Below are positions 32,269 to 37,168 of a stretch of DNA of 45,653 nt, piece by piece (the stretch's first letter is position 1; every line of letters starts with the position of its first letter). The notes under the pieces are model-generated. The model saw nothing but the letters and a program-made list of their open reading frames with translations, had not been told where the DNA came from and made no database searches. Source of the stretch: Salpingoeca rosetta (Eukaryota > Protista > Choanoflagellata); NCBI GenBank assembly GCA_033442325.1, contig JAWQFM010000001.1:1134124-1179776 (forward strand). The letters are read 5' to 3'. Both the position numbers and the translations under genes were made by a program.

Positions 32269-35200
32269 ATGAAGGCAGCGCTTGTTTGGGTTGTGGTTGT
32301 GGTTGTTGTTGTGGTGGTGGTGGTGGCAGCTGAGTGTGGTGAGACCAGTGCGACGCCCGTCCTCACTCGCCCAGGCTACCACTTCTCTCGACGTGCAGGG
32401 TATATTTGTGTGTGTGCACCTGTAGTTGTATGTTTATGCGTGTGTGTGTGTGTGTGTGTGTGTGTGTGTGTGTGTGTGTGTGTGTGTGTGTGTGTGTGTG
32501 TGTGTGTGTGTGTGTGTGTGTGTGTGTGTGTGTGTGTGTGTATTGGACACCACCTTGCGATAGGATGCTGCTTTGTTGGCAGGGGTGCGGGTGCGTTGTT
32601 GCAGTGGAACTGCAATACATTTATGCACTTCCAGGCTCACTCACTCACTCACTCACTCACTCACTTACACGTACGTGCATACACTCACTCACTTACACAT
32701 ACGCGCATACACTCACTCACTCACTCACTCACTCACTCACTCACTCACTCACTCACTCACTCACTCACTCACTCACTCACTCACTCACTCACTCACTCAC
32801 TCACTCACTCACTCACTCACTCACTCACTCAGGTGGATGAACGACCCTGTGCCTTACTTTGAGGAGAGTACAGGCACGTACCACTTGTTCTTCTTGTGCA
32901 ATCCGACAAACAGCACCATTGCCCCGTGGGCGCCGGGAGGACACCAAGGATACTGCCACGCAACAAGCACCAATCTCGTCACCTGGCGCCATCAGCCACT
33001 GGCAATCAACAATTCCGCAGGCACAGGCCAAATAGTGAACCCGCGTGCACTCAACTTCACATCCAGTACGGCCATCGTCCACGATCGCCTGCCATTCGGT
33101 GAGCAACAGCCCACACAAGCGTTCCCACATGCCTGCACAGGGCTTATCACCCTCGTTTTGTATTCCTCCTCGCGCTCGAGCCTCAAAGCATGAGCTCACA
33201 CCCTCCCTCACTGCTTCTTGGTTACATGACACGCTTGTTCGCCGCTGAATCTTTTGTGCATGCTGTGACAACTGCTCGCAGATGCACGCGCAGTTGCAGT
33301 GCAAAGCGGTGGATCACTGGCCTTCACGAACAACTCAGACCTCCTGCATTGGTCGGCGGCCTCTCAAAAACCAGTGTTCTCCCACCCACCAAATGTGACA
33401 CTGATTGGTGACGTCGCCTTGACTGCATGTCCCGGCCAGCGTTCATCCTCATGTGTCCGGGTGCGTTGTACCTGTGGGCGCCTGCGAAACCCTGCTTCTT
33501 GGCACTCTTGTCCCTGCGACTGCTGCTGATGATGCGATGTGCACAGATGTGTGTCTGTGTATGGGTGTGGTGTGTCTGTGTGTGTGTGTGTGTGTGTCTG
33601 CCTATGGGTGTGTGTCTGTGTCTGTGGCTGTGTGTGTGTGTGTGTGTGTGTGTGTGTGTGTGTCATTCTGTCTGTGTATGGATGTGTGGTTCATTTCACA
33701 ACTGTGTGTGTCGGGGTCATTTCGGTGAGTGTCATGTGTGACTCGATTATCAATCCATGTTTTGCACCCACACCTGTGCAAGCAGCTCTTGGCAGGAAGC
33801 AGCACGGGCGACGGATTTGAGAATGGCACAGCCGCTGTTGTTGCCTTTGAATCAACCGACTGGTTGCATTGGAATTTTACCAGCACGCTGTTTACCTGGC
33901 CGCGCTCGCTCACGCCCCGCGCAGAGTGCGTGGACTACTTTTCGCTTGATGGCTACAAGGTATGTATGTATGCAGTGGCACTTGCACTAACCACCCTCTC
34001 CCCCGAACACCCGTGGTGCAGTGGCAGTACTTGTGCACGAGCATCGCCCTCATAAGCTACCCGGCATGGAAATACGTGCGCCACGCATCACGGCATGACA
34101 GGTGTTGCTGTCCTCGATCCCTTCAACGGGGCGTACGCACTGGGCAATTGGCCACGAGGACGCATCCGGCCGTTTCGTGGCAAGCACCCATGGTGTCCTT
34201 GATAGCGGCGGTGCATATGCTGCTAAAACACTCGTCGATGACACGGGCCGCCGCGTAGCATTGCACTGGGTGCGTGATGGGCTCTCTGTGGCTCTGGAAA
34301 AGGAGGCGGGTTTTGCAGGATACCAGAGTCTTCCCCGCGAGCTCCATATCATTACATCTCCCTTGACGCTGTTGGCAAAACCTGTACCAGAAATGGCGAC
34401 GTTGCGACACCATGCACTCTCTCTGCCCAACATTCATCTCAGAGACTCCACATACGATTTTACGCTTCCCACATCCGATGGCGGTATGAATGCGGTCAAG
34501 TTGTTCTCGCCTCTGTGCGTGCGTGCTTGCGTGTGTGTGTATGTGTGTGCGTGCGTGCGCGCGCGCGCGTGTGTGTGTGTGTGTGTGTGTGTGTGTGTGT
34601 GTGTGTGTGTGTGTGTGTGTGTGTGTGTGTGTGTGTGTGTGTGTGGTTGATTGGTTGGTTGGTTGTGCGCTCGACAATGTTCGTTCATCAGATGGCTGGT
34701 TCGTTTGATGATTTTGGTTCGTTTCATCTCTCTTGATCATGGCCTTCATGTGCTCAGGACAATTCAATTTGGTGGTTGACCTTCGCTTCACGGCCCTCTC
34801 ATCGAACAAGAGTTCCATTGGCATTCGGGTGCTGACCTCCCAGAACCGTACGGAACTAACCACGGTGCGTACGGGAGCATGTGCCTGCGTGTGTGTGTGC
34901 ACATGTGCTGGTGCTGTAACTCCGCGTCTATGGTTGAATCTCTGCATGGAACCCCTCCTCCCACAGCATCTTGCTCGTGTTGGCTTCTCACCCGCCACCC
35001 CGGTGGTCATCGTCGTCGTCGCCGTCGTTGTCGGTGGCTTCTCCTTGGTTTTCCTTCTTGCATTTCATTCAACGCCAAGATTCAAGTGACTCAAGCATCG
35101 CAAGTTGTGTCCTGTATGGATACGCCCCTGGTGCCTGGTGAGTGCAGGTGCGGGGGAACGCTTGTGGTGTGACTTCGGGCTGATTGTGGTGCAACCATGG

Positions 35201-37168
35201 TCTGCTGGCTTACAATGAGACCATGTGACATTGTGCCGTGGACATGCTCAACGCATTGACAGATACGGATCGTCCAGGTGGTGATATCACCCACATCCCG
35301 CTGTCTGGCCAAGAAGCAACAGCAGGTCACTGCCGTCAACTCTGCTGTCAGAACACAGACTGCGTCGGCTTCGTCTTTGATACACGTGCGATTGACTCTC
35401 CTTGATTTTGCTGGAAAAGTTCACTCGTGGATTTGGGTGTTGGAGAGCGTGCGGGATTGTGCGTGTGTGCGTGTATGTGTCTGTGTGTGTGTCTGTGTGT
35501 GTCTGTGTGTGTCTGTGTGTGTCTGTGTGTGCGTGGGTGTGTGTGTGTGGGTGTATGTGGGTGCGTGTATGTCTGCATCTGTATGTATGTCTATGCCTAT
35601 GTCTGTGTGGATGTCTGTGTTGGTGGGTGTGTGCAACATATCAACAGGCACGCTTCAATCTGCCTGGCTTGCCACTGAGCAGCAGTGATGTTGTGGTTTG
35701 TTCGCGCTCTGTTGCACACCGCCTCAGGAGATTCATTTTGCTGGCTCAAGGCGCAGATTATGCCGCCGGTGCCGCTGAAAGGCGTCACCTCTGGCATCCT
35801 CTCGGCTGCAAACACCTCCATCGTTCTCAACGCAACAAGGTATGGCATTCAAGGACACCCCTGTCCCGGCCTGTTTCAAGCCTTGTCTCACATTCACATC
35901 TGTTTGCTCCTTGCTCATGTGTGTGTGTGCATGGGTGCGTGTGTTTCACGTCCAATTCAAGGTCCAGCACGTTGCCGGGCGCCGCAACGCCAGTGTACAC
36001 ATGCAATGTCCAGTCGCTGCCTAACGTCGAAGCGCACTCCAGTAGTTCTGGTGATTGCATGAGCACTTCGGCTGCTGGCGACATGCCAGGTGTGTTGTTG
36101 TTGTTCTTCTTCTTCTTCTTCTTCTTCTTCTTCTATTCTTCTTCTTCTTCTTCTTCTTCTTCTTCTTCTTCTTCTTCTTGTTCTTGTTGTTCTTGTTCTT
36201 CTTGTTCTTGTTCTTGTTCTTGTTCTTCTTCTTCTTCTTCTTCTTCTTCTTGTTCTTCTTGTTCTTCTTCTTCTTCTTTTGTGGCCTTCCTTTTACAGGT
36301 ACCTTACCTTCGTGCCTGCATTGCATTGCCTTGCCTTGATCGTGGCCAGGCAATGACTACCGCCATTTCAGGGGCGTGCTCAACTCAACCAACGAGTGCT
36401 ATGAGGCCTGCTGTGGTGACAGCAAGTGCGCTGGCTTCACCTTCGTTCCGAGCAGCACTGTCTCAGATGGCGATTGTTTGGTATGTCGTGTTGTCTGTCC
36501 ATGAGCTGCTGTATGTGATCGAACGACGGAATGGTACCTGATTTTGCCTGCAGTCTTCCTCGATCGTCGTGTCTGTCAGCCTGACTGTTTGAACCCCACC
36601 ACAACCCACACGTTTGCAGCTTGGACTCCCTTGTTGCTGGCTCAAGACAGCTTGTCAAGAAGCCAGTGGAGACCACAGCTTCACGTCTGTCAATGTCACC
36701 CAGCAATCGTAAGTGTGTCTTGAGTGTTGGAGCACACCTGTCCTTGTAACTCCAAGTCAGGCTTTGACTGTTTCACCACCGTGCATGCTCTCATGCGTAA
36801 CCCCTGGATGCTGCTATCAACCGCGTAACACTTAACAGGCGACAAGCACACGTTTCTCTCAATATCTTCGTCGATCAATCGGTGGTGGAGGTCTTCGCCA
36901 ATGGCGGGGTCGCAGCACTCACCGCAGCGGTTCATCCCCAGGTGTGTGTGTGTTTATTAGGCGCGTAAATAACACTGGATTCCGGGTCTTTTCTTGGTAT
37001 TCTTCGGTCAACTAGTCTGTACCTAACGCTACAACTGCGCCACACCAATTCTCTCGCAAACAGAACTCCTTGCCAGACAACATTGAGCTGTGGTCCGAAG
37101 GCGCGGAGGCAATCGTGTCAACGACGGCATACACGATGGCAATGGATAATGATGATGCAAGCTGTTGA
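32269..37168 (+). CDS. Secreted glycoside hydrolase family 32 (beta-fructofuranosidase/levanase-like) with two PAN/apple domains inserted in the GH32 C-terminal domain, ~695 aa, 14 exons
   Basis: Exons 32269-32399, 32833-33098, 33282-33460, 33786-33959, 34102-34483, 34758-34864, 35080-35137, 35263-35385, 35728-35839, 35962-36089, 36350-36480, 36620-36708, 36839-36941, 37064-37168; phases consistent, total 2088 nt. Motifs: RPGYHF...[54 protein letters not shown], and GH32[18 protein letters not shown]. Confidence 0.88.
36091..36280. repeat. Compound (TTG)/(TTC)n polypyrimidine microsatellite in a GH32 intron
   Basis: Directly visible in the sequence. Confidence 0.9.

Follow-up and report, generated by a model that had tools for sequence, protein, structure and literature searches.

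PAN/apple domains occur on secreted proteins such as Toxoplasma MIC4 and oomycete CBEL, where they bind sugar or protein in some cases. In these systems the domains are arranged as tandem arrays or fused to CBM1, and we know of no module of the MIC4/CBEL type that is nested in a glycosidase domain. Solved GH32 glycosidases, including the Arabidopsis cell-wall invertase (2AC1), the Thermotoga invertase (1UYP/1W2T) and the Bacteroides endo-levanase BT1760, share a five-bladed propeller, a C-terminal beta-sandwich and the motifs WMNDP and EC. The Gln of YQxNP, the Trp of WGHA and the Ser of FSGSA presumably belong to the fructosyl-binding pocket of GH32. The roles of the catalytic triad in the family are as given in PMC6560043, and CBM66 on the SacC levanase of Bacillus subtilis is an example of an accessory binding module attached to a GH32 enzyme (PMC6560043).

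This article describes a GH32 gene of the choanoflagellate Salpingoeca rosetta, found in a window of 45,653 nucleotides (the whole stretch of DNA that was analysed). Like SacC with its CBM66 (PMC6560043) and the AbFEH protein of Anaerostipes (PMC12678895), it joins a fructanase-family unit to a non-catalytic module. However, CBM66 adds a further beta-sandwich to the terminus of the chain, whereas the module of the S. rosetta gene is a small, disulfide-rich PAN domain that is predicted to be nested in the resident sandwich. The gene has in common with the MIC4 and CBEL type of lectin module a small cysteine-rich domain, of predicted PAN fold, on a putatively secreted protein. It differs from the solved GH32 enzymes named above in carrying two PAN_4 domains in loops of the sandwich and in the alteration of YQxNP, WGHA, FSGSA and probably RDP; no PAN-bearing GH32 was present among the solved-structure matches listed.

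The gene occupies positions 32269-37168 of the forward strand and was modelled from the sequence as 14 exons (E1 to E14). Its 13 introns all have GT-AG borders and the codon phases agree at every junction. The acceptors of E3 (33282 or 33300) and E4 (33783 or 33786) are ambiguous, and the modelled coding length is 2073 nt, or 2088 nt with the two alternative in-frame acceptors. It is a single locus in the 55.4 Mb genome of S. rosetta. The supplement of PMC7971027 contains an entry, PTSG_00535/EGD72514/F2TWR8, of 695 aa with 13 introns and the families PF08244;PF00251;PF14295, listed as a candidate for horizontal gene transfer and not characterized further. Intron number and the three Pfam families coincide, and the gene in the window is this published PTSG_00535/F2TWR8. 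Literature searches on the combination of GH32 with a PAN/apple domain and on the accession numbers of the gene yielded no describing paper; the match obtained for PAN_4 plus Glyco_hydro_32C was an unrelated survey of legume receptors. The view of an earlier, sequence-only reading that the architecture is uncharacterized thus holds as far as descriptions are concerned, but the gene and its Pfam composition were already public (PMC7971027).

The domain content was established by Pfam and profile searches with single exons as queries, using the curated cut-offs of 27 bits for PAN_4 and 22.1 bits for PF00251. Read in exon order, the Pfam families are GH32N (E2, E4 and E5), PAN_4 twice (E8 and E11) and GH32C (E13), which confirms a gene with GH32N, two PAN_4 domains and GH32C. 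E1 (32269-32399) contains the start codon, a poly-Val hydrophobic stretch that resembles a signal peptide and the motif RPGYHF, with a weak match to positions 25-36 of the GH32 profile; RPGYHF lies upstream of the GH32 nucleophile block. The first blade of the propeller, with WMNDP, is encoded by E2 (32833-33098; PF00251, 35.6 bits, with alignments to solved GH32 chains). E3 (33300-33460, or from 33282 with 18 additional nt) corresponds to blade 2/3 by profile matches. E4 (33783-33959) encodes a blade with the acid/base motif AECVDYF and scores 18.3 bits with PF00251, below the cut-off yet collinear, and also matches the GH32 profile. E5 (34102-34483) encodes the last blades and continues through the linker into the beta-sandwich; like E2 it exceeds the PF00251 cut-off (32 bits), and it reaches 114.6 bits with the GH32 profile.

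The remaining exons were placed with the aid of a family profile built from 11 PAN-bearing GH32 proteins, on which E6 (positions 306-336), E8 (352-390), E9 (401-424) and E13 (453-483) are collinear. E6 (34758-34864) encodes the sandwich strands that precede the first PAN domain (PAN-1) and matches the family profile with E=7e-4 and positions 358-385 of the GH32 profile with E=0.06. E7 (35080-35137), assigned by position, phase and comparison by eye with Choanoeca, holds the end of a sandwich strand, the linker into PAN-1 and the Cys that opens the six-Cys pattern. Neither exon has a Pfam match, and a BLAST comparison of E6 with the two Choanoeca proteins found none; this pre-PAN part of the sandwich, recognized only weakly by family profile and position, is the weakest point of the model. 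The N-terminal half of PAN-1 is in E8 (35263-35385; PAN_4, 39.4 bits, E=6.4e-10; 56% identity to C. perplexa). Its C-terminal half, with the CWLK strand, is in E9 (35728-35839), which continues into the sandwich strand IVLNATR and was detected by tblastn with the C. perplexa and C. flexa proteins (P0002, 1.2e-4; P0273, 4e-4). E10 (35962-36089), collinear with residues 466-489 of P0002 (E=0.012), encodes the sandwich strand VYTCNVQ and, after a Ser-rich linker, the beginning of the second PAN domain (PAN-2). E11 (36350-36480; PAN_4, 29.4 bits, E=8.5e-7) and E12 (36620-36708) encode the N-terminal half of PAN-2 and its C-terminal half (CCWLK) with the linker back into the sandwich, and both map again onto the PAN positions of the family profile (358-396 for E11; 400-419 for E12, E=0.018, with fitting phase). 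Core GH32C strands, including a quoted run of 17 residues, follow in E13 (36839-36941), where PF08244 is recognized at 38.2 bits over positions 104-133 of 158, and E14 (37064-37168) ends the sandwich and carries the stop codon, with a weak match to GH32 profile positions 461-482 and a fitting phase.

The two PAN peptides that the sequence-only reading had quoted were recovered at the expected place, as E8 plus E9 and as the end of E10 plus E11 and E12, and their location between GH32C segments was borne out by the order of the exons on the profiles. The HMMER check that it had proposed, run here exon by exon, matched PF00251, PF08244 and PF14295 alike. PAN_4 exceeds its cut-off in both E8 and E11, although each exon holds just part of a domain, and a six-frame scan of the genome agrees on the two domains (39.8 and 29.6 bits). 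PAN-1 contains six cysteines (one in E7, four in E8 and one in E9) and agrees in their number and order with C. perplexa and C. flexa. In PAN-2 there are nine cysteines, and a tenth if the Cys of the preceding strand is counted. Exon order and homologues together point to the nesting of both domains in the S. rosetta sandwich. Since omission of E8 and E9 (235 nt) or of E11 and E12 (220 nt) shifts the frame, neither pair is an in-frame cassette.

PAN-1 is, by sequence comparison, a family-wide insertion that protist GH32s carry at a single fixed position. The domain lies at positions 352-405 of the profile in P0002, P0148, P0154, P0156, P0168, P0191, P0132 and the second GH32 gene of S. rosetta (C22; PTSG_08188), and the site is common to Choanoeca perplexa, C. 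flexa, Phalansterium, five environmental proteins and this second gene. In P0132 the PAN follows directly after the linker, an odd position. The GH32C alignment produced by HMMER spans the nested PAN_4 in P0002, P0148, P0154, P0155 and P0156, and in the ESM Atlas 55 eukaryotic proteins form a cluster whose annotation combines GH32C with PAN_4. A word-index protein search with P0002 retrieved the query itself only, the search with alignment A3 added just C. flexa P0273, and the library of 50%-identity representatives gave no S. rosetta self match. The comparison shows that a nested PAN_4 is recurrent and site-specific in GH32s of bacterivorous protists, namely choanoflagellates, Amoebozoa and environmental eukaryotes.

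The protist GH32s with one PAN (PTSG_08188, Phalansterium P0148, Ceratiomyxa P0155, Choanoeca P0002/P0273 and environmental P0154/P0156/P0157/P0168/P0191) share with the window gene the three Pfam families and the PAN site at 352-405. Unlike them, the window gene has another PAN in a later loop, and its active site is remodelled. PTSG_08188 is intronless, against 13 introns in the window gene, and retains all the canonical motifs together with one PAN. Amoebozoan-type members score about 300 bits with GH32N, compared with 32-36 bits per exon in the window gene, whose divergent clade has long branches in the tree. The PAN-bearing GH32s do not all fall in one clade, and the AU test rejected their grouping in an exclusive single clade (p=2.6e-5, for a group that was named after the tree had been seen and that involves long-branched sequences). 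As the tree and the AU test split these proteins, a single origin of PAN-1 is not established.

PAN-2, absent from the Choanoeca orthologues (P0002, P0273), is seen in the S. rosetta gene only and is probably a lineage-specific second copy in a later loop. Internal exon duplication was considered as its source; E8 and E11 are 31% identical over 26 residues only, the intron phases of the two domains differ (phase 1 versus phase 0), and one domain starts at an exon edge and the other 5 residues inside. The two insertions, described as independent in the sequence-only reading, have different standing: PAN-1 is common to protist GH32s, including a second one in S. rosetta itself, and only PAN-2 is specific to the lineage.

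WMNDP, with the nucleophile Asp, is kept at the start of E2 and aligns to FMNDP of solved invertases. The EC motif with the acid/base Glu is kept in E4, where RAECVDYF is paired with MLECPDFF in weak PDB matches to solved GH32 chains (E 0.7-1) and aligns to the GH32 profile at E=1.3e-10. Compared with the solved chains, E2 reads FLCNP for YQxNP (YQYNP), YCHA for WGHA and VNPRA for FSGSA, that is, Q is replaced by L, W by Y and SGS by NPR. The RDP position (FRDP in GH32) appears to read GDV in E3, within LIGDV, which gives a weak collinear match to FVGDV of C. perplexa (E=1.8). FVGDV and GLGDA of P0132 align under FRDP at an Asp column (D135) that is over 90% conserved, and RDP reads GDV or GDA in the clade of the window gene; probably, the Arg and Pro were lost and the Asp was kept. 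A PDB search with E3 returned only spurious WD40 (Seh1) matches. An in-frame RNP downstream of E3 was rejected as RDP equivalent, because stop codons follow it and no donor restores the frame.

Because the nucleophile Asp and the acid/base Glu are kept but the sugar pocket is rebuilt, we infer a changed substrate or reduced activity. The explanation favoured, with reasonable though not high confidence, is that PTSG_00535 encodes a secreted GH32 protein in which two nested PAN_4 domains would act in the manner of carbohydrate-binding modules and the catalytic unit has an altered substrate or diminished activity. What the analysis shows is the architecture, the common site of insertion and the altered motifs; secretion, binding by the PAN domains and catalytic activity are predicted.

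An active secreted hydrolase of fructan or sucrose (levanase, inulinase or invertase), with the PAN domains as lectins directed at prey exopolysaccharide that contains fructan, is possible but considered unlikely. The GH32 fold with WMNDP and EC speaks in its favour, as do the fructoside activity of all the solved structures, among them 2AC1, 1UYP/1W2T and BT1760, that match the P0002 model (E about 1e-20) and the precedent of accessory modules on GH32 such as CBM66 on SacC (PMC6560043). Nevertheless, FLCNP, YCHA, VNPRA and probably GDV stand in place of conserved motifs, and the genome already encodes a canonical PAN-bearing GH32 in PTSG_08188. With four conserved motifs apparently replaced and the WMNDP block missing from the C. 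perplexa relative, the earlier proposal of a fructan hydrolase that may act on levan was not backed by the sequence.

A similarly low probability is given to a pseudoenzyme, that is, a non-catalytic GH32-like lectin, adhesin or coat component in which both the PAN domains and the former active-site funnel bind. It would account for the rebuilt pocket, the long branches of the clade and the transcript of C. perplexa, from the same clade, without WMNDP. However, the S. rosetta protein retains WMNDP and EC and, probably, the RDP-position Asp as well, none of which a pure binder would need, and the N-terminus of the C. perplexa protein may be an artefact of transcript or assembly (pLDDT <50 over residues 1-76 of its model).

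The AlphaFold2 models of two relatives bear on a third alternative, in which the PAN domains have no ligand and are structural only (stability, oligomerization or quality control). In the P0002 model a folded PAN (residues 391-435; strands 391-394, 417-421 and 431-435, helix 402-411; pLDDT 65-75) lies between the sandwich strands 361-370 and 454-462. In the model of the C22 ORF the PAN (488-530; strands 488-493, 511-518 and 524-530, helix 499-506; pLDDT ~80) is flanked by low-pLDDT segments at 470-486 and 532-549. In GH32 enzymes the sandwich often serves chiefly folding and stability (PMC6560043), as a structural role would have it, but both models predict a separate folded unit between sandwich strands on two low-confidence linkers, not packed into the sandwich; one site is kept across distant protists and a second copy was added in S. 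rosetta, so that this alternative appears quite improbable. Finally, an artefact of the gene model, with PAN exons that are part of a different gene or are left out when the GH32 message is spliced, might be suspected from the microsatellite-rich introns and the short exons of that region (58-131 nt), but can be set aside as highly improbable in view of the fitting phases, the frame shift on skipping either exon pair, the equal intron number and Pfam families of the published model, and the same nested PAN in transcriptome-derived relatives from Choanoeca, Phalansterium and Ceratiomyxa.

For the favoured explanation, a secreted GH32 with binding modules and an altered pocket, PAN-1 would be an ancient insertion whose fixed site is common to the protist GH32 family, and PAN-2 a later second copy restricted to the S. 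rosetta gene. The PAN domains may anchor the protein to a surface made of glycan or glycoprotein, for which the envelope of the prey, a glycan of the food vacuole and the cell's own coat are candidates. The rebuilt pocket of the propeller would then serve a changed substrate or a reduced activity in the window copy, and its canonical PAN-bearing paralogue PTSG_08188 would be the likelier ordinary fructosidase. A bolder version, that sandwich-nested PAN_4 domains are a previously unrecognized class of carbohydrate-binding modules of protist glycosidases and that the two-PAN copy is a neofunctionalized enzyme or lectin for some glycan other than fructan, from bacterial prey or from the coat of the choanoflagellate, is speculative and rather doubtful.

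Although GH32 enzymes have been studied extensively, no paper was found on a binding module nested within their C-terminal sandwich. The practical gain is modest and consists of a candidate module resembling carbohydrate-binding modules and a case of domain insertion plus duplication within a beta-sandwich. Because S. rosetta grows in culture and is amenable to genetic manipulation, a test of the PAN domains and the pocket should be feasible. The canonical one-PAN enzyme and the divergent two-PAN copy form a natural pair in one species, from which the role of the PAN domain and the ligand of the rebuilt pocket may be learned.

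The GH32 gene of the window is split into many exons and runs over 32269-37168 on the + strand; its exon borders were set by three-frame translation and splice signals. The 14 exons, all on the + strand, are E1 (32269-32399), E2 (32833-33098), E3 (33300-33460), E4 (33783-33959), E5 (34102-34483), E6 (34758-34864), E7 (35080-35137), E8 (35263-35385), E9 (35728-35839), E10 (35962-36089), E11 (36350-36480), E12 (36620-36708), E13 (36839-36941) and E14 (37064-37168), with a summed length of 2073 nt. All 13 introns start with GT and end with AG, and the cumulative phase is consistent across all junctions. 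The PAN peptides proposed by the sequence-only reading are exact products of this model: PAN-1 of E8 and E9, and PAN-2 of the end of E10 together with E11 and E12. The exons are inconspicuous in the ORF list because of long intron microsatellites, namely (GT)51 (32440-32541) and (CTCA)48 (32636-32831) in intron 1, (TG)58 (33548-33663) in intron 3, (GT)57 (34531-34645) in intron 5, a TG-rich array of 10-18-mers (35458-35620) in intron 8 and (TTC)59 (36104-36278) in intron 10, which make both strands appear to hold long ORFs that are spurious and of low complexity. The gene is followed directly by a Ty1/copia-type retrotransposon (37528-42901, +); its 544-aa ORF has a CCHC knuckle as well as a Pol beta-barrel domain (PF22936), and its 747-aa ORF has RVT_2 (PF07727, 190 bits). 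Elsewhere in the window, a low-GC stretch (GC 0.40) at 7574-9655 (+) holds a 693-aa ORF that scores 99 bits on the domain of mitochondrial branched-chain ketoacid dehydrogenase kinase (PF10436).

Searches with the window gene were run on single exons, and the other queries were natural proteins. In Pfam, Glyco_hydro_32N was matched by E2 (35.6 bits), E5 (32 bits) and, under the cut-off, E4 (18.3 bits); PAN_4 (cut-off 27 bits) by E8 (39.4 bits, E=6.4e-10) and E11 (29.4 bits, E=8.5e-7); and Glyco_hydro_32C by E13 (38.2 bits, profile positions 104-133 of 158). The exons are collinear on a GH32 profile constructed from 65 homologues (E1 25-36, E2 41-95, E3 131-156, E4 178-228, E5 231-345, E6 358-385, E13 424-453 and E14 461-482, with E6 and E14 weak), and the PAN exons fall between positions 385 and 424, that is, within the sandwich. 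The exon matches and the profile order bear out the earlier observation of two PAN modules inside the GH32 C-terminal sandwich, and the architecture is real.

The gene and its domains are already in public records. Matriano et al. (2021; PMC7971027) include PTSG_00535 (EGD72514, F2TWR8) in their supplement as an 'uncharacterized protein' with PF08244, PF00251 and PF14295, a CDS of 2088 nt (695 aa), 13 introns, a best match to an Arthrobacter GH32 (31.8%) and a flag as candidate horizontal transfer. Intron number and domains are the same as in our model, and the gap of 15 nt (2088 vs 2073 nt) would close with two alternative in-frame acceptors, E3 from 33282 (+18 nt) and E4 from 33786 (-3 nt). 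PTSG_00535 is absent from the main-text discussion of that paper; the literature search found it named in no other paper, and found no paper describing a GH32 with nested PAN.

When E5 was run in a full HMMER scan, no close copy came up, and three relatives matched the PAN exons too: P0002 from the Choanoeca perplexa transcriptome (557 aa), P0148 from that of Phalansterium solitarium (436 aa) and P0132 from an ENA contig. By HMMER, PAN_4 is nested in the GH32C alignment in P0002 (383-435 in 301-529) and in P0148 (239-290 in 164-391). Additional PAN-bearing GH32 members are P0273 from Choanoeca flexa and the environmental proteins P0154, P0156, P0157, P0168 and P0191, and the Ceratiomyxa relative P0155 has a weak PAN. 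An ESM Atlas cluster of 55 eukaryotic proteins (score 0.87), taken as a lead only, is annotated as GH32C in 71% and PAN_4 in 53%.

On a family profile built from 11 PAN-bearing GH32 proteins, the PAN occupies positions 352-405, one identical loop, in every member tested (P0002, P0148, P0154, P0156, P0168, P0191, P0132 and the second S. rosetta GH32 gene). Exons E6 (306-336, E=7e-4), E8 (352-390, E=1.8e-13), E9 (401-424, E=2.6e-4) and E13 (453-483, E=3.4e-11) align to the same profile. This fixed insertion site across protist GH32s is new; with PAN-1 a family trait, the architecture is not unique to this gene. The AlphaFold2 model of P0002 (pLDDT 73) matches solved GH32 enzymes (2QQW/2AC1, 1W2T, 3UGF and 7VCO, E about 1e-20) and places the PAN (strands 391-394, 417-421 and 431-435; helix 402-411) between sandwich strands 361-370 and 454-462, with low-confidence flanks at 371-388 and 440-451.

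The AU test rejected one clade that would hold every PAN-bearing row and nothing else (p=2.6e-5), the grouping being post hoc and the branches long; the identical insertion site argues in the opposite direction and would favour common descent of these proteins. In a quick ML tree, E5, P0002 and the protein P0001 were grouped with support (SH-aLRT 96) on long branches, and the amoebozoan and environmental PAN-bearing GH32s were placed with plant invertases, apart from them.

E11 (358-396, E=6.6e-7) and E12 (400-419, E=0.018) map to the PAN positions of the 11-protein profile again and therefore represent a second PAN copy, likewise a new finding, located between the strands VYTCNVQ and LNIFVDQ. 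It is not present in either Choanoeca protein, where about 30 residues lead from the post-PAN-1 strand directly to the '...LDIIIDNS' strand, and PAN-2 is therefore a stretch of about 115 residues that the S. rosetta lineage has added. The introns of the two modules have similar, not identical, sites and differ in phase, and the modules share about 31% identity over 26 residues; from these features an internal duplication is a possible origin of PAN-2.

The genome scan (55.4 Mb, 68 contigs) located the second S. rosetta GH32 gene as a single intronless ORF of 642 aa on the - strand (L004:655-2583, contig C22 about 412886-414814), which corresponds to the published PTSG_08188. Its motifs are canonical (NDPNG, YQ, WGHA, RDP, EC), and its PAN_4 match follows GH32N and precedes the GH32C tail (six-frame scan 28.9 bits, hmmscan 26.1 bits). 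Its model (pLDDT 79.7) has the same arrangement as P0002: sandwich strands run to 464 and again from 555, and the PAN at 488-530 (pLDDT about 80) has low-confidence flanks at 470-486 and 532-549. PTSG_08188 is recorded as a 'soluble acid invertase' with PF08244 and PF00251 only (PMC7971027); the PAN nested in its C-terminal sandwich is an overlooked, new feature.

In GH32 catalysis a nucleophile Asp acts together with an acid/base Glu and with the Asp of the RDP motif (PMC6560043). The window gene keeps the nucleophile motif WMNDP, encoded at the E1/E2 junction, and the acid/base EC (AECVDYF). Alignment to solved chains places FLCNP at YQYNP, YCHA at WGHA and VNPRA at FSGSA. IGDV would be the counterpart of FRDP: the related sequences FVGDV of C. 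perplexa and GLGDA of P0132 line up beneath FRDP, in an Asp column that is >90% conserved, and the S. rosetta-to-C. perplexa alignment is weak here. The altered Gln, Trp, Ser and Arg positions are those that we take to line the fructosyl pocket in GH32 structures. The gene encodes a protein of GH32 fold in which two PAN_4 modules are nested and the pocket is rebuilt; this altered pocket is new. The replacement 'NP(P)RAL' is common to S. rosetta and C. perplexa and so has the appearance of a new state that is being kept, not of decay. The P0002 transcript is marked 'complete' and is without the WMNDP block (residues 1-60), which makes it either a Choanoeca pseudoenzyme or a splice/assembly variant; the loss may be a transcript artefact, since the first 76 residues are poorly modelled.

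Several features of its sequence suggest that the window protein is secreted: the N-terminus is hydrophobic after Met-Lys, N-x-S/T sites are numerous, the Cys framework is even, and there is no C-terminal anchor. PAN modules appear to be promiscuous among S. rosetta secreted enzymes: PTSG_11259 combines GH31 (PF01055) with PAN_4 (PMC7971027 supplement), and the six-frame genome scan gave at least seven PAN_4 matches over the cut-off. Levan had been proposed as a target, and nothing in the analysis links it to this protein. The PAN modules would act as binding modules on flexible tethers, a role likened to that of CBM66 in the SacC levanase (PMC6560043). Judged from its motifs, the catalytic domain of the window gene would have a changed substrate or lowered activity, and the canonical enzyme on C22 would be the likelier ordinary fructosidase of S. 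rosetta.
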